DNA of 64,000 nucleotides, from positions 48,670,001 to 48,734,000 of the forward strand of contig OZ260666.1 of assembly GCA_965285935.1 (NCBI GenBank). Reading direction: 5' to 3'. The stretch comes from Ophelia neglecta. Taxonomy: Eukaryota. Shown one piece after another: positions 528 through 63,180 of the stretch. Made by a program: the position numbers and the translations under genes. Each line of letters starts with the position of its first letter. The first letter of the stretch is position 1. The notes beneath the pieces are model-generated. The model searched no databases, was not told where the DNA came from, and saw nothing but the letters and a program-made list of their open reading frames with translations.

Positions 528-1087
528 ATTGGCTTTTGCTATAGACCTATATGTAAATTAGAAGAGAGTAAACTTTATCTTATTTAAGTACTGTTGAAAA
601 GCCACGAGTGTTTCTTGTATACGACACATTCGGCCAGTATTTAGATTCACCCGCAGTCCGAGACTTCGTCTACCAAAGATAGACCAATTAGTGGCAAGTT
701 GGATTATGAACCTATCTGTGCCAATCTAGCTATTACGCATCTTGTGAATATTAATATCGCTGATTACAACGCATAGTGACTCTTTTGTGACATATTATTT
801 TGTAATATATAAATCAAAGTGTTAAAGGCTAGGGTGCCTTCTTACAATCAAACAATCGGCCAAGGAAAAGGAGTTTGTCCTTTCTAGATATCACTTACTT
901 CTATTGTGACATCTTTTTTTTTCATCTGTAGAATAATATGACAGCTCGTGTATTAATGTTAATAGTAATCATTTTGCACAAAGAAATCCGTATTGATTTT
1001 CGGCTGATGTACTCATCCTCGTCCTGACATGATCGAGATTCTTAGTTATTTGAACTCATATATGTATAATTCATGTTTGTTTCAGAT

Positions 1088-3890
1088 ATGACGGAGGAGG
1101 AAGTTCTCGAACTCTGCTGTACAGCAACTTATGAACAAAATGGATTTGCTGTTGATATAGGCAAGTACAAGGTTACTGGTTGTGTGTACGTTTATGTGTC
1201 TTCTTCGCGTCTATTAAATTTAATTTTTTTTATCAAATAAAATGAACAATCTATTTAACAATATTAGAAATAAGAAATTAAAAAATAGCCTTGGAAAGAA
1301 AATCGCATCAAAATAAAACAATCCACTATCAATATTTGCTATGTAGGCGGTACGTTGATCAAGTTGGCTTTGTGTCGGAGTGACTCGGAGACTGGCGTCG
1401 CCACCGTAGCCTTCCGATCTTTCCCGCTGTCCCAGCTTGAAGAAGCTATGGCATGTATTGAGGAAAAATATAGCGATCTATTGGAGACAGACGCAAACAT
1501 AATTTGCTGTGGTGTAGGTATTGGAGATCGTAAACAGAAGCTTTATGACACGCTGAAAATGCGGTAAGCAGCGACTGATTCTATTTTTGTCCATTCGGCT
1601 TATTTGGTTGACAGTGAATTTGTTTTAAAAGCAGCCAACGTCACACCAAAACGAAGCGGAAATTGCATAAAACTCAAACATAAAACATATTGGCTACCCC
1701 CCCCCCCTCCCCCACCACCACCACCACCACCCACCCACACACGCAAGAAATCAAAATATTCTTTTATAATTAATCTGTAATCGGAGATCCAGAGATCATA
1801 TAAGTATAGCCTATAAATACCTACACACGCCCTTTATCAATGGGACAGTACGTTTGTACTAACTTGACATGAATCTTGATTTACTTATTCCAATACAGTG
1901 TGCAGACAGCCTCGGAGATGGACTGTTTCGTGGAGGCATTTACCTGTCTGTACGAGAACCTGCCACGGGAGAAGATGCTGCACGCTAAATCAAAAAAGGG
2001 TCGAGCATACGTTGAGCGACAAAGTGCAGAGTGGAGAGAGATGATCACTAAAAGTCAGCGTTTTATTGAAAAGGAAGAGGATTCAAGCAAGTGGAAATCT
2101 AGCGACACGAAACTTTCCGAAGAAGTGCCTTCTCACGCCCAAGGAACATACCCCGTGTTGCTATCAATGATGGGATCTGGGATGGGCATCCTTCGGGTTT
2201 AATAATTATCTAACTTTTAACGAGAAATGGGTGTCTAAAAATTGAACTTTTGAACAACTGAAAATTGAACAATTATACCACGCGTATGTATATAAACCCA
2301 TGTGTTTTTAGCTTATAGGCCTTTTGAGTAATCATGAATTAATAATCGATTTTTAGATCGACAAAGGGAATAAGTATGAGTTATTAGATGCAGGGACGCG
2401 ATGTGGGAGATGTTTCTTAGGGCTCGCTGGTTTGCTTACTGGAGTGAAGGTACATGGTAAAGTTTTTTTTTCTTTAGAGAATGTTTAAATATTGCGTTTA
2501 TGTAATTATATAGATGGGCAAAATTGGGGTGTTGGCCTCCACAAAGAAGCATTGTTAAAGTGGAAAAGTGTTATTTTTAGCTAGAAGCCATTCATTGAGA
2601 TTATTACTTACATATATTTATTCATTGGGTAGAACAAATCGCACGTAAAAATGAAAGTTATTGTGCTACTATTGCTAATTGCGATGTGGTTTATAAACGG
2701 AGTTTCATGGAATATATTCTTCCGCGTCTACTGAAAGCATTCTTATAAATGGTAAACATGGGTTCAGGGGGTGGCGTTCGGATGTACCATATGTTTGGGG
2801 TGAAATTCGAAATCACTCGATAAATGTAATTTTGCTCTGACCCCAGAACTTTGACGATTTGATACTGTTAGCCGAGAACGGTGATTCAGATAATATCCAC
2901 TCTTTGGGAAAGCATGTCAAACCTGAAAACAACGATGATGCCTATTCTGTTATACCTGACCACATGCCTCTATACTGTTATGGACAAACAGTTGGAAAAA
3001 ATTTGGGTTAGTCTCCGTTTTATTCGGCCTTGAGAGTAAATCTTCATGTCACGTCCACACTTATCTTCTTGCAAAGTATTAAGTATGATAAAAAAAAGTT
3101 TTCATAATTTGGCGCTATTTCTTCTCTAATGTACAGGAATGCTTATATGCTTCGAGTTTACCTCTGTGGTTTAATTTTATTTTCAATCCTAACACGTTCC
3201 AGGTGACTTTTCAAAAGAAGACCTGGCCGCTGCGGTTTTGAGTACAATATCACAGGTGACTTTATGCGAACAGCTCATGCATTCAACATTTAGTATCGGC
3301 CCCTATATAAAATATCATACGAATGTCACGTGACACAAGTGTCTCTTACAATCAAATGATTAAATACATATTATGCTTCTTTGATACTTTGGACAAGAAT
3401 CAAGCTAATGTTGACCATTCTTAAAAACCTACAGGATATTGCGCAAGCCGTATTATTGAGAACGCTGCTCCATAAAATAGAATCTGTCTTTTTCTGTGGC
3501 TCTTTTTGTGGACTCTGTCATGTTGTACTCGATGAGGTATCGAAGTATTTTATGGAGAAAGCCGCTCTTCACCCCCAGGTAAGATAATGCATGATCTACT
3601 CACTCTTGTATTTCCTTCCCTGTTAGTAATCTCCTATTTTTACCTGTTTTAAGACAAAACCTAAGTGTAACCCCATAAAAAAGTCAATTTCTAACTATTA
3701 TTGCGAGCTGCCATCTTTTCACCATTGTTGTTAATTCTTAAGCATGCCTCTTATCGTATAAATACAAAGTTTTCTCTCTTCTACATTTAAACAGATAGAA
3801 TTTGGTTTCATGAAGTACGGGGGATATCTTGGTGCGCTCGGGGCACTTTTACGGACTCTCAAAATAAAGTATGACAATTCCAACCTATGA
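1088..3890 (+). CDS. Divergent type II pantothenate kinase-fold protein (PANK4 N-terminal-domain-like, kinase domain only), paralog 1; 8 coding exons, 377 aa
   Basis: Hand-spliced exons 1088-1160, 1347-1563, 1899-2196, 2357-2449, 2847-3006, 3203-3255, 3435-3578 and 3795-3890 give an open 1134-nt frame. All acceptors are AG. Donors are GT except intron 1 (AG|GCAAGT). Fumble/PanK-II motifs occur in order: FAVDIGGTLIKLA, SEMDCF, YPVLLSMMGSG, FLGLAGLLTG-K-NFDDL-LAENGD, DFSKEDLA, ISQDIAQ, VFFCGSF, GYLGALGA. Exon lengths match paralog 2 exactly. Confidence 0.92.
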
Positions 3891-7383: not shown

Positions 7384-10300
7384 ATGGCTGACGAAGAATT
7401 TATGGAGCTCCCTTGTTCAGTAACATGGGGGCAGAATGGAATGTCATTCGATATTGGTATCTACATCTGGAATATACAGTTATTTTATGTTACTTACATG
7501 TAATACGTTACAAGGTAGTTAAAACGTCAGATAATTTTAGTAAAGTTTAAAGGTCTTTGTAAAAAAAAAAAGATAAAAAAAAAGACCCTATTTACAAGTG
7601 TTCTGTAGGCGGTTCCTTGATCAAACTGGCCTTTTGTCGGAGTAACAAAGACACTGGTCTAGCCAGGATCAACTTCCGGTCTTATCCGCTGTCCCAGTTC
7701 GACGAAGCGATGGATTATGTACTAGAAAACCACAGCGACTTACTAGAGTTAGATGCGACTGTATGTTGCAGTGGTTTGGGTATCGGAGACAGATCACAGG
7801 CCATGTATGACAAACTGAAAATTAGGTAAGCCACTAGCGATTTCAGTTAAATGACAAATTAGGTCATTTTAGAAAAAAGCTATATAAATTGGAATCTACT
7901 AGCTATAATTATATGAACTCGGCTCTTTTGCTAACGCTAAACGACATGTTTGAAAAAAACAGAAAACGTGTCAAACACTTTGTTTGGGTAACTATACTTG
8001 CCCTATTTTGTGGCATTACGACGTCAAAGTTGTGGACAAACCTGGACAGGTGTAAAGGATATTTTCTTTATTATCATCTTAACCTAGCTATACATGATAT
8101 TTCGTATGATCAAGGAACCAGATAAGTCTAATCCCACAATGGCTATGTTTTATAAAAAAGTCATCTCCAATAAAATGACTGTTAGAGCTAAGCGTATAGA
8201 AAATAACGCTAAAAGCAATGCATGATAAATTAGTGAACTTAAAACAGGACGCGAAAGGAATCTTCATTAAAATTCAGGGCGAAAATTCCATAACGACACT
8301 GACGAGTAGTGTGATAGATAAAGAGGATGTGCGTGATCATTATCAAGAGTAAACTACTTGATTCTGCCCTAACAACACAGCTTATAGGGCCTTTTGAAAT
8401 ATTGTTGAGACGTCACACCATTATTCATGCAGTAGGTTCGGAAGCACGAATCTACTGCAGACAGTAGATTCGTACACTACCACCAGTAAATTCGTGTGTA
8501 TTGCAATGCACGAATCTACTGGATGATAATTTAAGTGTGCCGGCGACCCATTCCACCGTCTAGTTTGTGTTTTTTGAGAGACACCAAATCCCAGCCATTG
8601 AGAAAGCGCATTTCTCGATTGTTGATGAAAAAATTTGCTGACTAGACGAAATGATACCCCGTAGTGTATAAGCTGGAAAAGGTTCTCCGTTTTGCTATTT
8701 CACTTCAAAGATAAACGTCGTGAGGCGAAGCACAGTTTATCTATTCTTATCTAGTGGCTCCCATATTACTGGGCCCCTTTGTAGCTCGACATTATATCCA
8801 TCCGAGAGTTACGCCACTTTCTCAAATCAGTGAACAAATAGCCTTCCTAAAAGTGTGGCAGCACAAGCCCGACTTAACTTGTCCATCGTAGACTTGTCGA
8901 CAATGAAAAACGCAGGAAAATATAGGTCTGCTATAATACACCCGCTATACTTAATGTTTAAATTTCAGATATATGCCCATTTCAATATAGGTCAGTAGTT
9001 AAAAAGAAAAAAGAAATCAACGCGACTTACCCTTTTCCAGCTTTCTGCTCGTCCCTAAGTGTTGAACTGCCCAAACTCTTACACTAATAATTGACTGATT
9101 TGCTCTTTTTACATTTTTTTCTGTTCGTCCTCGGATATGTCAGAACAAATTGGATGATATCTGGCTTTGTTTGACGACATTATTTAGATATCCAATTGCA
9201 GATTGTGGGAAATATGTCTAACTCAGAACATGTCGTGTCTCCTCCTATCAAAAGATCATTCCCCCTATCATCGGTAACTTGAGTGAAATAGCTTTGCACT
9301 ATGAATAGATCATTCTAGAACCCATATTAGACAAAACGTTATCAACCTTCCTCGGCTACAACTCATGTTCCGAATGAAATGCTATGCCATGCACTTGGCC
9401 CGGCGTCGTTACGCAACAACCTCTTGTTTTGCTGCCTTCCGAATATACAGGTCACAATATGAATTCGCGGCCGTCACCCTGAAGATGTTATGCAATATAT
9501 TAAGTCAGGCAATTAACATGGAGCGATATATTTGTGTAGATCGAATCACCTCGGCGCTATCGCGCCTCGGTGTTTCGACTGCACAAATTTACCGCTCCTC
9601 GCCAATTCTCCTATTCTAATAATGCCAAGACAAGAGGGCGGCGGAAAGGAGAATTATTAGTGCAAAACTAATAATACATTCTTTCATTCCTGCTTAATGG
9701 CAGTTATAATTATAATTACTGTAGAGGGAAGACGGTTTCGGAACTGGATTGTTTCGTGGAAGCGTTTTCCTGTCTGTACGAGACTTTACCACGTGAGAAG
9801 ATGATCCATGCCGAGTCGGAGGTGGGCCGAGCTTACCTCCTTCGACAGCAGGCAGAATGGTCGCAAATGATACATGCCCAGCAGTCCTTTGTTGAAAAAG
9901 GAGAGCAGTCAACGAATTGGAGCCCGAAGGAGCACGAAACTCCAAAAACACAACATTCCCACCCACAAGGAACCTATCCGGTATTACTGGTCATTCTTGG
10001 CTCCGGGTTTGGCGCTTTTCGGGTAAGAGGCACTTCATAGCTTTTTGCTAACCATGAACATTTTATTGAAGTATTGAGTAACATGTAATTTTTTTTTATA
10101 TCCATAATATTATGAAAACACAAAACCACTAACCACTTAATCATCTTCCTTTAGATTGATGCAGCAAATAAATATCAGTTTGTAGATCCAGGCACCAGAT
10201 CTGGCAAGTTCTTTTTAGGACTGGGTAGCCTACTAACTGGAGCTCAGGTAAAGAATTTGTATATACCTGTTAATAGCATTATAATTAATTATTTTATGTT

Positions 10301-12501
10301 TTTTCCTAAGTCGAGACATACCATGTAAGTTTTTTTTTCAAGGAAAATAAAATGTGAATTTATGAGTATGCAAGGGTAATGTCACATTTTCTTTCATCGC
10401 CATTTTCTTGCCTCTATCATGTTTAATTCATATAGTTCAAAAATCATTTTTAAGCTGAACTTTCTTTATTTTTTGATCTTAGGTGGCCCCTGCGATAAAG
10501 CGAATAGTTTAAAATCTTTAAATAAGTGGGGGTTTCCCTGTGTGAAAATAACTGATTTATATATAATTTAAATGTTTATATTAATATTGTGAACAAGTCA
10601 CATTTTCCAATAGTTCTGATTCTAATTTATTAATTTGTAAAGCCCTAACTGTTTACAGAATTTCGACGATTTAGTGCAAATGGCAGAGAAAGGTGATTCA
10701 GAAAGGGTTCAGGTTTTGGGCAAGCATGTGAAAACTGGCAACAAAGACGATGTTTATAGTGTCATTCCTAACCATATGCCTCTCTACTGTTTCGGTCAGG
10801 CAGTAGGTAAAAATATCGGTATGCGCCATTTACATGAACATAAATCAGTATTGAATTACACTGTTTTTCCCTCCCATCGTTAAATCAACCAAAACTGTTT
10901 TCTCCTACCAATGTTAAACCAACCAAAGGTGCCTCTGATTTATAAGCCAAGTATACTTATTTCGTGATCATTTTCAAATCATCAGGCCGAATCGAGACTC
11001 TAAAGTAAAAAGTATTCTCACATACTTATGGGCTATAGTTATCCAGCTTTGAACGTCCGAGCCTAGGATAAGTTTTTACTTATTGGTCCAAGTTACCAAG
11101 GCTTAAAGTTTTCTTAAAATCGAATTTCTGTACAACAGAAAAATCACTGACGATTTATCGTGCGTGATGCTTAAATATTCCGCCGGTGTGTTTACAAATA
11201 TACTCATTGTTTACAGCTTGACACTGATACATTTTCCGTGCGCAAAGTTGGAAAAAATTATTGTTTATTCGGTTCTTATACACCGTTTCCTTCAATTTCG
11301 ATCTTATGACTACGGTTGGGAACGAGAGCCGATTTAACAGTTATTATATAGGTCCCTGTGAAGCTAAAAAATATGTACTTTATTAAAGCACTATATAAGC
11401 CTGGTCCATGGAACTATCGATAGTTGATCCGTCATCCACTCGTCAGGATTCATGAAGAATTAGTAAAATATAGTTTCACCTGAAAGGAGATGAAAACCGA
11501 AGCCTTATTATGAATGTTCGAAAGATATGCATCTGGCTTAAAATTAGCTCTATATTTGGTTCAAGAAATGAAATATATAAGGTTAAACTGCCAGAGAAAC
11601 CGGAAATTGCCTAAGAACTTTCGTGCGGGTTCACCTGAGCTCTGTCGTCCAAGGCTGGATAACCTGACTTATGAATGTTAAACCGTTAAAAAACATCCTT
11701 AAGTATTTAATATCAATTTTTAAACGTTAATGTCAACAACAACAAAAACAGCGCAATGGAATATGGGCATATTTGGTTCCGATTAGTAAAAAGACGATAA
11801 AGCTTAACGATTGCAATTTAAAGTATTATAACTGTCTTAAAAGTATATATTCGAATTTGACCTATTGCAGATGATTTTTCCAAAGAAGACTTAGCGTCGG
11901 CTTTACTGAGTACAATATCACAGGAGATGTTTAGGCCTACACTGTGCAAATGACCTCAACTTAGATTTAAGTATCATTGGAGTCGAATAATGAGACCATT
12001 TCGCCTCTATATTTACAGGATATAGCTCAGACCGTGTTCCTGAATATGAAGCTTCATAAGACCGAGTCCGTGTTTTTCTGTGGCTCTTTTTGTGGGTTGA
12101 GCCAAGTAGTACGAGACGAAGTTTCCAAGCATTTTATGAGCCGAGCTTCTTCCCAAAAAACGGTCAGATAGTAGTGAATACACTTATCCAATTGCGTCTA
12201 TGATTGTAGATCTACATCTATTAGGGTTGTTTGTATATCTCTCTTTGTAAACCCATACAGTCATGTGTATTTGTACTTCTTTAACTGTTTCTTATTCCTA
12301 GCATGTGATTGGTTTTTTTTTGCGAAATTAAAGCTAGTTTGATTGTATTCTTTTATACTAGAAATCGCGCATTAATATTTTCGTCTTTTTTACATTTGAA
12401 TACAGACTGATCATGGGTTCATGAAGTTCGGTGGACATCTTGGTGCACTGGGCGCACTATTGCGAACACTCAAAGCAAAACAGGGGAGCAAAATACCCTA
12501 A
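7384..12501 (+). CDS. Divergent type II pantothenate kinase-fold protein (PANK4 N-terminal-domain-like, kinase domain only), paralog 2; 8 coding exons, 377 aa; intron 6 has a GA donor
   Basis: Exons 7384-7456, 7609-7825, 9725-10022, 10155-10247, 10659-10818, 11871-11923, 12019-12162 and 12406-12501 (73/217/298/93/160/53/144/96 nt, same as paralog 1). Motifs: SFDIGGSLIKLA, SELDCF, YPVLLVILGSG, FFLGLGSLLTG, MAEKGD, DFSKEDLA, VFFCGSF, GHLGALGA. No stops or indels in the exons. The exon 6 donor reads CAG|GAGATG, so the gene uses a non-canonical splice site, is a broken allele, or carries a base error. Confidence 0.85.
8428..8522. repeat. Cluster of five direct and inverted copies of a CAGTAGATTCGT-like motif in intron 2 of paralog 2
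   Basis: Copies at about 8430(+), 8445(-), 8462(+), 8484(+) and 8509(-) form alternative hairpins. They lie inside an intron expanded to 1899 bp (335 bp in paralog 1). Confidence 0.75.
11038..11663. mobile_element. Probable MITE of about 626 bp in intron 5 of paralog 2
   Basis: Imperfect 30-bp inverted termini: GTTATCCAGCTTTGAACGTCCGAGCCTAGG versus CCTGAGCTCTGTCGTCCAAGGCTGGATAAC (24/30). It explains most of the intron size difference (1052 versus 196 bp in paralog 1). No clean TSD. Confidence 0.65.
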
Positions 12502-46600: not shown

Positions 46601-49068
46601 ACTGGTAGATTCGCTATTTAGGTCAATAAGTCGTATTCACTACACATCTGGATTGTGTGTTGATGAACCTTTACCTATTGGTTATAAAATCCGAATTCAG
46701 TAACGCATTTCAAAAAAATTCCCCCCCCCCCCCCGGCAAATTTCGAGTTTATGCAAGTTATTTTGATTCGCCTTTCCTGGAATCAATGAAAGGGTCGACC
46801 GCTTATTACCAAACAGCCATGTTGTAATGGCTGGCCTTGTTTGGATACGGGATGGTACGCTACAATGCAGTTATGTTTTAAGAACACATATCAATATCCT
46901 GACTTCGCTCTCGGGATTGCGGAACAAATCATGTTTCGATCCGTAAAAGCAGCAGCCTAGCGTTTTGATAGGTTCAAACTAGTGAATGTTAAAAAGGCGG
47001 CCCTTGTCTCTTAATTAATGGCCGACAGTATCAATGCATCTTCATTATGCCCCATCATTATTTCATTCGAAGCTTTCAAGAAGATAGCTTTCATATATAT
47101 ATTACACTCCTATCTGAGTAGATCTTCCATAGAACCTGACAATTTTATTGGTGATTAATTTGGTAGCTCGAATTTAATATTTCATAATAAGCCCCTAACA
47201 TGCTCTTCTCCCCAGGTAAAATATGATTTTGATACACTCTAAATAATATACATGATAGCCAGTAGCTGGGACAAATATACACACTGCCGATTTTATTGAC
47301 TACCATAATTATGTGGAAACGACTCAACATATGACATTATGACACAATTCCCATGCTGTTTGGCTTCTACCAGGCTTTTAATATACGAGTTATGGCTAGC
47401 TGTATTCCAATGCGACACCTATGAATTGAACACAATGAATAATAGATATATGCTCATTCTATTAAACAAAATGAATCCGAAAATATTATTAACAATGAAA
47501 CACATTACCAAGCATCAATAATTACAGATGTGTCAACTGTGTAACCTTTTTTTCGTTCATAAGGAAACTGATATTCTGCGACTTGTGTGGTCTGCCGAGG
47601 TTCTAATATACCAACCATATCGGAAAGCCCATTTCTGCCGTGCTGCCTAACGCCATAATTTCTCATTGGTAAATTCAATTCGTTTCAGAATCTGTCATAC
47701 TTGTACATGTGAGGTTTTTACTCGTGGCTTGTACCAGGTCCGTTTATTTGATTTAACTGTGACGTTTGCGTAGTATAAATGTAAACTTTATAATCCCAGG
47801 CTCGCCAAGATGAACTTTGCGCTGATCAACAACCAGTTAACCATCAGCAATTATTCTACAGTTGGTTCTAGAACGAAAAACCAATATCCGCTTGAAAAGA
47901 GTTTTTTGTTGAAGTTATAATTGTAACCGGGATGAAATTGTGGAATGCAATGACACAAGCACGATTAGTTTTCATCTAAAATAGGAAAAGAGCAGTGTGT
48001 GTGTGTGGGGGGGGGGGGAGTCTATGCCGTGTTCAAAACAGCAATGAAAATACTGTATATGTTTACATTAATTGAGTATGACTGACTTCACTTGGCTACC
48101 GTCGTGGTTGTTGTTGTTTGTAATGCCAGGGCTTCGTTGTTGATTGTTTGTGAGAGTGTAACGGAAACTGAACCCTAAAGACCGCCTGTCCATTGGTTAA
48201 TTAGAAAAGAGTTGTTTCTTCAGGTATGTTATAAATTGTATTACACATAAAAGTTCAAGGCATGCGTTTGCATAGAGCATTAACATAGAAGGACAATGGC
48301 TGCTTACATAGACTGTGAACAAAAAGGCCTAGAGGTCCTGGGTTCTGATATTCGATCTTAATAGTGATTTTTTGTGTCTTCAGAGCACTATAATTAAAAA
48401 CCTTTTAGGAACTCACTCCAACTTCCTCTGATAGCTCTCCCCAGCTTGTTTTACTTCATTGAAGTAGGTTCTGTTGTGCATCACTTAAATTATATATTGG
48501 TGACAGATTTTAGACGGTTCTAAATGTCTTAAGGTGAACGTTTCCCAAGAATAATAGTCGCAATGGGCCAAGGTTTTATCATACCCTCGTACTTGAGTCG
48601 GTATCATTTGGTTTACCGCCATCCGCGTGGCAGGTTATGGCTCTCTGATTATGAAGGTTTTTGGCCCGAGATTTTAAATGCGTGCGATAGAAGACACGTT
48701 TCATATTATATGGTTTTTGCGCTGATTAACCTCTGCCTTCACGTACCCATATTATACACCTTTAAGTAACATACTCGTTAGAGACCTCAGGATTGGTGTT
48801 TGTTAGCCTGCAGTTGATGTTCATGGATGCATACGTGACCAATGAAAGGCTAAATCCTTATCAATTTGTTTACACTAATATCAAAAGACATGCGTAGATG
48901 TAAAGAAAATTTAAGCTACTCTGGGATCGATCATAATGATACATACTCGTACGATCCCACAGTAATTTTTTATGGACAGGTGGACTGTTTAAAGTTCTAC
49001 CGTCTCTGAGGACGATGAAATGATTCATCTACAGCTGATTCATTAAATGGTATCATCATGGTCGCAGT

Positions 49069-50296
49069 CTTAAGTGGAATCCCCACATTAACAAAGTGTC
49101 TAGTAAGGTTTGGTATTTTAAATAGACTCAAACACTCTCTTCCTGAACATATTTTAGTGATGCTGTACAATACCTTAATTCTCCCGCATTTTACCTACTG
49201 TATTACTGCCTGGGGTTTCGATTGTCATAGATTGATGGGATTACAGAAAAGGGCGGTGAGGATCGCCACATTAAGCAATTTCCTTTCTCATTCTGAACCA
49301 ATTCTTAAAAGACTTGGTCTACTGAAGATACAAGATCTTTACAAGTTAAATGTACTTAAATTCTTCTATAAATTTTCACATTTGTTACTACCTGATTATT
49401 TCACGTCGTTTCCTATTTTCCAACACGTAAATTTACATTCATATAATACAAGAAACCGAGATCAATACTATATCCCATTTAGTAAACATTTTTTCACTAA
49501 GAAATCTATCAGGCACAGTGTAGTGGCTGTAGTTAATGATAGTCCTCCCTCTGTATTAGATAAAGTTTCTACGCATAGCCTGCAAGGCTTTACTAATTAC
49601 GTTAAGAAAAGCTATATTACTTCGTACAGTGAAAGCTGTAACATTCCTAACTGTTATGTGTGTGCAAGACAATAATTCTGCTTTATATGCATGTATGTCC
49701 ATATTTATGCTCTCTGTATAATTTTTTGTGTACGGGACAATGATTTTGCTTTATATGCAGGTATGTCCATATTTATGCTCTCTATATAATTTGAGGCCGA
49801 AACTGTGCATTTGAATTTTATGAGCGTACAGGACAATAATTTTGCTTTATATGCATGTGTCCAAAATAATTGTTATGCTCTCTATATAATTTGTGTGCAG
49901 GTCAATAATTTTGCTTTATATGCATGTATGTCCATAATCATGCTCTCTGTATAATTTGAGGCCGAAACTGTGTATTTAAATTTTATGATAGTCTTATTTT
50001 CACAGATGAATTAACCGTTAATCTGTACACGCATCATAATTATGTATGTGGTAACGCATTCAATTCTCTTTTACTTTTTTTCAATGTATTTATATTATAC
50101 ATCTTTATTACATACGGCTTTGTTTACTTTGGCTTAACCATGGTTATAATGATTTATTAGTCTGGGTGGCCCTCACGCTAGCGACTTTTACAAGTCTTAG
50201 TGAGGGTCTCCCTGGTCAAGTGTTATATTGTAAATTCATACAACCTTTATCAATTATTGTACATATGTTAGACCAAATAAAATTATATCTGAATCT
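49069..50296 (+). mobile_element. 5'-truncated non-LTR retrotransposon (L2/Crack/CR1 group): ORF2 C-terminus plus 3'UTR and tail
   Basis: Post-RT LINE motifs: LKWNPHINKVSSKV (frameshift near 49111), then GILNRLKH, LYNTLILPHFTYC..AWG, LQKRAVRI, HSEPIL..LGLL, YNTRN and a terminal CxxxxCYVC (stop at 49675). The 3'UTR has internal repeats, a stem-loop at 50168-50208, AATAAA and an (ATCTGA)-type tail. GCAGT flanks both ends (49064-49068 and 50297-50301) and may be a TSD. Confidence 0.88.
49667..49990 (+). repeat. Higher-order tandem repeat in the LINE 3'UTR (2 units of about 165 bp, each made of two related subunits)
   Basis: TGCTTTATATGCA...ATGCTCTCT.TATAATTT recurs at about 49679, 49747, 49843 and 49912. 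GAGGCCGAAACTGTG follows only subunits 2 and 4. Confidence 0.85.
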
Positions 50297-61870: not shown

Positions 61871-61914
61871 ACCACATGTTCTTAGGCATTCCCAGGATAC
61901 AGCCAGACTCCATC

Positions 61915-63180
61915 ATGGCGTCGCCATCACTTTTCTTCACTATCGGCTGTCTAGTCTTGTTCATTAACGCCATTGTGACAATCGCCTGTCCGGTTATTGT
62001 AAAGACAAACCATACCAATCTCTGCGAGTGCACCACTATGTTAGATATCTACTGTAGCGGCCTTCAGAAGGTGCCCACATTTTACAGGAACGATATTGTA
62101 TACAACGGATTATACATGTCTAGACAAAATATAAGGAATCTCCCGAATGTGGTATTCTTTAATCTTATGGTGAAGAAAATTGAGCTAAACTTTAACCCAA
62201 TCGGTGACAATATCGAGGTTAATGCTCTGGCTGGTTTGGAAAGGACTTTGGAACAATTATACATGGGTGGGTGTCGAATAAGGACTTTGCCCACAGGCAT
62301 GTTAATAGGACTGGAAGCAATGAAGATTCTCCATTTGTGGGGTAATCAAATTCGTGATCTCCCCCCTAACTGGTTTAAAGGAGCGGCCAACTTAGTGGTA
62401 CTACTTTTGTGGGGAAATCAAATCCGCACTGTTGACATCGATTCATTCACTGGGCTCACCAGTCTGCGGACATTAGATTTGGAGAGAAATCAGATAACTA
62501 AACTGGACCAAAAAATGTTCCGGGATCTGACAAATCTTCAATCACTACACCTCGGGGAGAATAATCTTATAACTGTAAATGGGGAGACATTTACCTACAT
62601 GAGCAACTTAAAAGTACTAAATTTGGATGCTAACGGTTTGGAATTTATTTGGCCAAAGGCATTTGATGGTCTTAGGAATCTAATGATTTTAAGCTTACAG
62701 GATAATGCAATCGATCTAATATCGGACCAAGTTCTGGGTCATCTACGAAACCTGTCAGTTCTAAGGCTACAGAACAACCATATTAAGCATTTATGGGCGA
62801 AAAACTTCGACGGACTTCGGGCCTTGCAGAGCATAGACCTATCTCATAACATCTTAACTGAGCTGCCCGAAGGTGTCTTTCGGCAGGCACCTAAGCTTTT
62901 GGAGCTCTATCTAGACAATAACAATCTTACATCTCTGACCAAATGTATACTTCACAAACGTTCACGCCAAAACCTACGTACACTGTCACTAGTGGGTAAT
63001 CCCATTGTGTGTGACTGCGAAATGTCGTGGACCGTGAATCTACAGGCCCGGGGAGTATCAGTCTGGGGAACGTGTCATCATACCCCGAAGGAAATCCTAC
63101 TCAAACTGACGCCAATTACTTACAAATCAAACTACTACCTGCTCAGCGAACCATGTAATGACAAAGATTGTCGCATGTAA
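61915..63180 (+). CDS. Secreted leucine-rich-repeat protein (signal peptide, LRRNT, about 12-13 LRRs of 24 aa, LRRCT); single coding exon, no transmembrane segment
   Basis: The ORF is 434 codons from ATG 61876. The in-frame ATG at 61915 (catcATGG, good Kozak context) precedes a hydrophobic signal-like stretch (MASPSLFFTIGCLVLFINAIVTIA). This is followed by a Cys cap (CP...CEC...IYC), repeated LxxLxLxxNxIxxL...F units and NPIVCDC...W...C...C at the end. No specific orthologue recognised. Confidence 0.93.
   Translation: MASPSLFFTIGCLVLFINAIVTIACPVIVKTNHTNLCECTTMLDIYCSGLQKVPTFYRNDIVYNGLYMSRQNIRNLPNVVFFNLMVKKIELNFNPIGDNIEVNALAGLERTLEQLYMGGCRIRTLPTGMLIGLEAMKILHLWGNQIRDLPPNWFKGAANLVVLLLWGNQIRTVDIDSFTGLTSLRTLDLERNQITKLDQKMFRDLTNLQSLHLGENNLITVNGETFTYMSNLKVLNLDANGLEFIWPKAFDGLRNLMILSLQDNAIDLISDQVLGHLRNLSVLRLQNNHIKHLWAKNFDGLRALQSIDLSHNILTELPEGVFRQAPKLLELYLDNNNLTSLTKCILHKRSRQNLRTLSLVGNPIVCDCEMSWTVNLQARGVSVWGTCHHTPKEILLKLTPITYKSNYYLLSEPCNDKDCRM

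Follow-up and report, generated by a model that had tools for sequence, protein, structure and literature searches.

We asked what two adjacent genes of Ophelia neglecta that resemble type II pantothenate kinases (PanKs) encode, because their ATP loop and catalytic Glu are kept while the site that should hold pantothenate is replaced. The genes lie in a stretch of 64,000 nucleotides (the window; GenBank assembly GCA_965285935.1, contig OZ260666.1, positions 48,670,001 to 48,734,000 of the forward strand), which has a G+C content of 37% and belongs to the contig that we call C9; our genome searches covered the whole 762-Mb assembly. Type II PanKs are housekeeping enzymes with one reaction, accompanied by a few dead copies (vertebrate PANK4, apicomplexan PanK2). 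From the DNA we established the descent, the intactness, the selection and the residue pattern of the pair. We give about an even chance to the reading that both genes are functional and kept by selection, and that they encode ATP-dependent phosphotransferases which have given up pantothenate and act on another small molecule.

By three-frame translation and splice-site inspection we found that the two genes stand in tandem on the + strand, with eight exons each: copy 1 at 1073-3890 of the window (382 codons, exons summing to 1149 nt) and copy 2 at 7384-12501 (377 codons, 1134 nt). In both copies the exon sums are divisible by 3 and there are no internal stops, and the eight exons follow one another in the same order and frame, an agreement well beyond chance. 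A local tblastn search with the copy 1 exons detected these two copies in the window and no others. All splice junctions of the pair are GT-AG except for a GC donor at intron 1 of copy 1 (1160/1161, G/GCAAGT; GT at the same position in copy 2) and a GA donor at intron 6 of copy 2. The latter intron begins with GA at 11924-11925 (CAG/GAGATG) where copy 1 has GT (CAG/GTGACT), and the 15 exon bases upstream of this donor are the same in both copies. The GA letters showed no variant in DNA contigs (3 runs, one sample), and we found no alternative in-frame pair of donor and acceptor for this intron.

To read the active site we used the numbering of PANK3. In that enzyme the catalytic base is E138 (the E138V mutant is inactive); pantothenate is contacted by E138, S195, R207, V268' and A269', and the pairs E138-Y254' and D137-Y258' stabilise the pocket across the dimer. 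The numbering was transferred by aligning the exon of the genome's own PANK1-3-like gene to chains 3MK6 and 5KPR, in which the chain index equals the residue number + 8. The landmarks are D137-E138, the DE of LDELDC; S195, the last S of GSGVS; R207, the R of YKRV; and G214-G216, the GGG.

The nucleotide-side and catalytic residues were retained in both copies. Exon 1 of copy 1 (1073-1160) runs from a start codon at 1073, or a Met at 1088, to D-I-G and ends in phase 1; exon 1 of copy 2 (7384-7456) aligns with it. Together with exon 2 (1347-1563 in copy 1, 7609-7825 in copy 2) it supplies the ASKHA phosphate-1 loop, DxGG(T/S)LxK, which reads DIG-GTLIK in copy 1 (1153-1160 and 1347-1363, split by the phase-1 intron) and GSLIK in exon 2 of copy 2 (7611-7625), with the Lys equivalent to K24. 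Exon 3 (1899-2196; 9725-10022) carries the catalytic Glu in SEMDC (1912-1926) and SELDC (9738-9752) and continues, in copy 1 through a variable linker, to the phosphate-2 Gly-Ser in MMGSGMG (2167-2187) and ILGSGFG (9993-10013). The adenosine-motif Gly is encoded in exon 7 (3435-3578; 12019-12162), which in copy 1 reads FFCGSFCG, with G321 retained and N322 changed to S. The retention of DIGG(T/S)LIK and of the E138 equivalent had been noted in an earlier inspection of the letters (the sequence-only reading), and the alignment to the PANK3 chains confirms the numbering.

Of the pantothenate contacts and the pocket pairs, the two copies keep no more than E138 and a Tyr that aligns with Y258. D137 is replaced by S and S195 by G in exon 3. 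In exon 4 (2357-2449; 10155-10247) position 207 is L in YELLD (2375-2389) and F in YQFVD (10173-10187), and GTRCGRCF (2393-2416) or GTRSGKFF (10191-10214) follows, ahead of the conserved FLGL..LLTG helix. The exon 4 profile of the divergent family places GGR opposite PANK3 G214-G216 with no gap, and copy 1 then reads Y205 E206 L207 L208 D209 A210 G211 T212 R213 C214 G215 R216 C217 F218. Because exon 4 aligns gaplessly, the Arg that the copies share falls on L213, and a second basic residue (R/K) on G216. The sequence-only reading was right about R207 becoming L/F, but its pairing of GT with GT was off by one residue.

The DIYGG/ASSFG segment is rebuilt in exon 5 (2847-3006; 10659-10818), which contains HSLGKHVK (2898-2921) in copy 1 and QVLGKHVK (10710-10733) in copy 2. 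Compared with the canonical genes it has K at Y254, then a short insertion, a Tyr (in a DDAY motif) that aligns with Y258 and, in both copies, an MPLYC(Y/F)G stretch instead of the V268/A269/ASSFG stretch; the whole motif is YSVIP.HMPLYC(Y/F)G (2943-2984; 10755-10796), seen as the new YSVIPDHMPLYCYG in copy 1 and YSVIPNHMPLYCFG in copy 2. There are changes elsewhere too. TGGGA in exon 2 has become CGVGI (1508-1522) or SGLGI (7770-7784), and the N-terminal subdomain falls short of the canonical one by ~35 residues. Exon 6 (3203-3255; 11871-11923), DFSKEDLAAAVLSTISQ in copy 1, is 88% identical between the copies. In exon 8 (3795-3890; 12406-12501), which ends with the stop codon in both copies and is KYGGYLGALGALL in copy 1, HEGY is replaced within KYGGY (3813-3827) and KFGGH (12424-12438). 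Every motif replacement claimed by the sequence-only reading was thus found in both copies; the motifs in the span it had given (2143-3006) are real, but that span covers only part of the gene, namely the end of exon 3 (2143-2196) with exons 4 and 5. The set of contacts that holds pantothenate in PANK3 therefore appears to be missing from the pair, with E138 the only contact left.

We then considered whether this pattern is maintained. An alignment of 373 codons gave 61.7% identity between the two copies, in line with the ~60% estimated earlier. Nei-Gojobori counts summed across per-exon alignments gave proportions of nonsynonymous (pN) and synonymous (pS) differences of 0.23 and 0.67, the synonymous sites being near saturation, and a ratio of nonsynonymous to synonymous change (dN/dS) of ~0.17. 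The rebuilt exons were at least as constrained as the others (exon 4, pN 0.20; exon 5, pN 0.19 and 68% identity). Moreover, a Logan contig from another organism (L013) encodes exons 2, 3 and 4 of an orthologue at ~50% identity, with CGIGV, SEMDC, GSGMA, V at position 207 and R213/R216. Because this contig carries the replacements, they are conserved between species and do not drift.

Does the pair belong to the PanKs at all? All homology searches of the pair were run exon by exon. Against the Pfam Fumble profile (PF03630), whose cut-off of 28.5 bits applies to a whole protein, exon 3 of copy 1 scored 17.9 bits (E=0.0018) and exon 8, which matches the last 15 positions of the profile (319-333), 11.5 bits (E=0.16). 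Exon 3 alone matched no PanK in the PDB. With exon profiles built from the divergent family only, PanK chains were the best PDB matches in three separate exons: PANK2, PANK1, CAB1 and PANK3 for exon 5 (E from 0.016), only PANK3 at the top for exon 4, and yeast CAB1 as the sole match for exon 7. These matches are singly weak, yet they are collinear and exclusive to PanKs, and they are the only meaningful PDB matches of the exon profiles. The pair also shares with PANK1-3, Fumble and Cab1 the order of the ASKHA motifs (phosphate-1 loop, Glu, phosphate-2 GSG, FLGL..LLTG helix, SKEDLA helix, adenosine motif and C-terminal GA.GA), although it differs from these proteins in the replaced D137, S195, R207 and Y254, the rewritten V268/A269 segment and the shorter N-terminal subdomain, and no single exon reaches the Pfam cut-off. 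On these profiles and motifs we assign the pair, by descent, to the type II pantothenate kinase (Fumble) family and the ASKHA fold.

The intron positions point to the branch of this family from which the pair came. The genome has two canonical genes, the PANK1-3-like gene at C1:66.544-66.547 Mb and a second gene at C1:40.475-40.479 Mb, which we identify as a PANK4 orthologue because DUF89 (PF01937) exons lie directly downstream of it. Four introns of the pair agree in position and phase with introns of the PANK4 orthologue (C1:40.472-40.479 Mb). One, in phase 1, interrupts the codon for the first Gly of GG in DIGG, and another, in phase 2, lies 6 residues upstream of the catalytic Glu; the other two, both in phase 0, follow GSGxxIL(K/R) and LLTxxK. 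At three of these four positions the PANK1-3-like gene has no intron (DIGG, after GSGVSIL and after LLTGC are single open frames), and its pre-Glu intron is at a different place. In parts the sequence of the window genes is also similar to the PANK4 type, for instance in the LAENGD stretch of exon 5, and R207 is lost in the pair as in human PANK4. Unlike PANK4, the window genes have no DUF89 in or near them; both stop ~15 to 20 codons past the GALGALL motif, and a genome-wide search for PF01937 found it only at C1:40.472 Mb (beside the PANK4 kinase exons) and C1:68.86 Mb, with none on contig C9. Because the introns are shared with the PANK4 orthologue and the DUF89 part is missing, we regard the pair as stand-alone descendants of the PANK4 kinase domain, without its phosphatase.

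Two observations accompany this comparison. The PANK4 orthologue itself (C1:40.476-40.479 Mb) retains the equivalents of both E138 and R207 (DEMSC, RIGGTSMGGGTF), of which the window pair retains only E138, and its kinase domain looks competent, unlike that of human PANK4, which is a pseudokinase through E138V and R207W. In addition, both window copies have an intron between STISQ and DIAQ (3255/3435; 11923/12019) that neither the PANK4 orthologue nor paralogues such as L009 and L031 have, the corresponding region being a single exon in them; the pair's ancestor seems to have gained it.

We asked whether the pair stands alone in the genome. A genome search with the Fumble profile scored 64 candidates, and the window copies were not among them; through the adenosine-motif exon it gave ~36 non-canonical loci, on contigs C1, C2, C7, C8, C9 and C17. 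A profile of the catalytic-Glu exon found 25 loci at E<0.1, which comprise 23 divergent ones (window pair included) and the 2 canonical genes. Three loci on C17, an 825-kb contig, are near-identical to loci at C7:11.3-11.7 Mb (e.g. the locus at C17:0.62 Mb, L027, and that at C7:11.51 Mb, L024); they are either very recent duplicates or an uncollapsed haplotype, and may inflate the family count by ~3. Because of the latter possibility we put the family, as a cautious lower bound, at at least 35 genes.

For a survey of residues we took 3-kb loci from the genome profile searches and read them wherever the exons were readable. The catalytic Glu was present in 25 of 25 loci, in the pattern E-[MLFWC]-[DSA]-C, and the loss of Glu that marks PANK4-type pseudokinases is thus apparent neither in the window copies nor in any locus read. 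The P-loop exon begins at the same split Gly throughout, and each P-loop exon found has the Lys, a position that had been left free in the search pattern. The phosphate-2 Gly-Ser and the adenosine-motif Gly are invariant in the family, while the Gly after the Gly-Ser and position 195 vary. The substrate side has changed, with other residues at D137, S195, R207 and Y254 and a rewritten V268/A269 segment. Position 207 is neither Arg nor Lys in any divergent member, whereas among ten aligned divergent members position 213 is Arg/Lys in eight and position 216 in nine. An eleventh aligned row, from C1:9.05 Mb, has a basic residue at neither; this locus and one at C2:1.56 Mb retain LFVKD..G.DY and SSFGK and look like intermediates. 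Exon 5 is the most variable part of the family in both sequence and length, and one paralogue (C9:35.48 Mb, L018/L039) has a Gly/Pro-rich insertion of ~100 residues between the Glu and GSG motifs, within one exon. The window pair is only 31-38% identical to its nearest paralogues in exon 5, and is therefore an old, distinct subfamily. The rebuilding of the substrate site predates the pair.

Outside this genome we compared exon 3 exhaustively with 1.84 billion representative proteins and obtained no full-length relative, only two exon-sized fragments from other organisms, one in a Logan assembly (53% identity; the Logan contig is the L013 described above) and one in a TARA ocean metagenome (39%). 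A word search with exon 5 gave no match, and a feature search of the ESM Atlas with exon 3 gave unnamed matches only, all <0.9. Full-text searches of a paper library for expansions of PanK-like or PANK4-like genes, and for PANK4 itself, found no description of such an expansion.

Could the pair simply be decaying duplicates, whose common replaced motifs were inherited from a single, already degenerate ancestor? The GA donor of copy 2, the failure of a search of sequencing runs to find any RNA run that contains the locus, and the lack of a full-length relative for exon 3 would fit such pseudogenes. However, 16 exons have neither a stop nor a frameshift, pN is 0.23 while pS has reached 0.67, and the motifs are conserved in another organism. 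Together with the Glu and the P-loop Lys, which are universal in the paralogues read, this bears out the earlier suggestion of selection rather than decay, and we consider decay of the pair very improbable; for copy 2 alone its chance is higher, because of the GA donor. It is also unlikely that the pair are still pantothenate or pantetheine kinases which hold the carboxylate with a relocated Arg (R213 for R207) and are insensitive to acyl-CoA feedback. The new conserved Arg lies 6 residues downstream of position 207, the Y258-aligned Tyr is kept, and PANK3 with R207W, like PfPanK1 with the corresponding change, is less active but not dead; both changes lower the affinity for acetyl-CoA, and R207W also that for pantothenate. 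But R207 is not the only change, as S195, D137, Y254 and the V268/A269 segment are altered as well, a PANK1-3-like gene and a PANK4 orthologue with E138 and R207 are already present in the genome, and at least 35 members with a hypervariable exon 5 are unlike what a single housekeeping reaction predicts.

A more serious alternative, to which we nevertheless give clearly less than an even chance, is that the pair are non-catalytic regulatory or scaffolding ASKHA proteins, perhaps nucleotide-binding, that work as homodimers, through pairing of the tandem copies in a heterodimer, or together with a canonical PanK. There are precedents in the dead kinase domain of vertebrate PANK4 (E138V, R207W) and in apicomplexan PanK2. 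The PanK active site is made of two protomers and heteromeric PanKs with a single complete site exist, and adjacent paralogues would be a natural heterodimer pair; the losses at D137, S195, R207 and Y254, the rewritten V268/A269 segment and the changes of the TGGGA middle Gly, the HEGY Glu and N322 would also be in keeping with a non-catalytic role. As in the apicomplexan PanK1/PanK2 heteromer, whose single active site is completed by PanK2, the paralogues each miss part of the residue set that stabilises the pocket. There, however, the missing residues are complementary, whereas the window copies both miss the same ones, and a heterodimer of the two would therefore not restore the canonical site. 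To our knowledge, the known PanK pseudokinases lack the catalytic Glu; here it is kept at all 25 loci, unlike in human PANK4, and the P-loop Lys and Gly-Ser are kept with it, a retention not easily accounted for unless the proteins catalyse a reaction or at least engage in nucleotide chemistry. Moreover, purifying selection acts on the rebuilt pocket too.

How would the pair work if, as we favour, they are phosphotransferases with a new acceptor? ATP would be bound and its phosphate transferred by the Lys of DIGG(T/S)LIK, E138, the phosphate-2 Gly-Ser and the adenosine-motif Gly. The acceptor pocket would have been rebuilt through D137 to S, S195 to G, R207 to L/F, Y254 to K and the rewriting around V268/A269, with basic residues added at L213 and G216. 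The new ligand may be anionic, because the added residues are basic (R213, R/K216, K254 and His at 247 and 252), and by analogy with PanK the substrate would probably be bound at the dimer interface. Because the Glu and the Lys occur in every member read while the lid over the acceptor diversifies, we infer enzymes that still use ATP, on other acceptors; catalysis, the new substrate and dimerisation are predictions. The sequence-only reading had proposed selection for a different ligand; our results support the selection and, on the residues named in the literature (E138, S195, R207, V268', A269' and Y254'/Y258'), the loss of the pantothenate contacts. Its further suggestion, an escape from acyl-CoA feedback, may hold by analogy with the lowered acetyl-CoA affinity of PANK3 R207W.

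Several points weigh against a catalytic pair with a new substrate. The Glu-exon profile itself contains the Glu, so that loci which have lost it may be under-sampled, and ~10 loci at C7:104.45-104.96 Mb matched only downstream of the Glu. The geometry of the pocket and the position of the new Arg are read from a sequence alignment. Beyond the pantothenate site, TGGGA has lost its middle Gly and HEGY its Glu, and N322 is replaced; any of these residues could be essential to catalysis. The non-GT donor at intron 6 of copy 2 and the missing RNA runs belong here as well.

The window contains other features. The long intron 2 of copy 2 includes repeated DNA (8362-9600), where contig depth rises to ~100x that of the flanks and contigs break and join, which suggests inserted copies of mobile elements. 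In intron 2 of copy 1 a C-rich simple repeat (1700-1740, poly-C and then CCA repeats) translates as a run of prolines and is non-coding. A weak Fer2 match of exon 7 (E=0.011) raised the possibility of a Cys cluster or Fe-S site, which we rejected: the Cys of CGRC and the last Cys of FCGLC are not conserved in copy 2. Farther along, an intronless open frame of 434 codons (61876-63180) codes for a protein with leucine-rich repeats (LRR_8, E=5e-99) and a hydrophobic N-terminus, and a frame of 205 codons (49058-49675) without a Pfam match may be the C-terminal fragment of a retroelement protein.

Finally, we asked what the pair may mean for the family as a whole. Tentatively, and with considerable doubt, we suggest that it may belong to a group of at least 35 small-molecule kinases that derive from PANK4, stand alone and radiated within one lineage, with an invariant ATP site and base and a hypervariable acceptor lid (exon 5). 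On this view they would form an undescribed family in a marine invertebrate that phosphorylates metabolites or xenobiotics. If so, its logic would be comparable to that of expanded families of detoxification kinases, and the window pair would be one old, conserved subfamily with a substrate of its own. Judged by their residues, these are PanK-fold genes in which the catalytic core is retained and the substrate site replaced, unlike the known PanKs with their one reaction. Dozens of stand-alone copies in which purifying selection maintains the ATP loops and the catalytic Glu while the pantothenate contacts are replaced would be the first sign that the PanK fold has been recruited to other substrates in animals. 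The family offers a concrete, testable set of candidate new kinases, and a natural experiment on which PanK residues serve ATP chemistry and which serve the binding of substrate and acyl-CoA.

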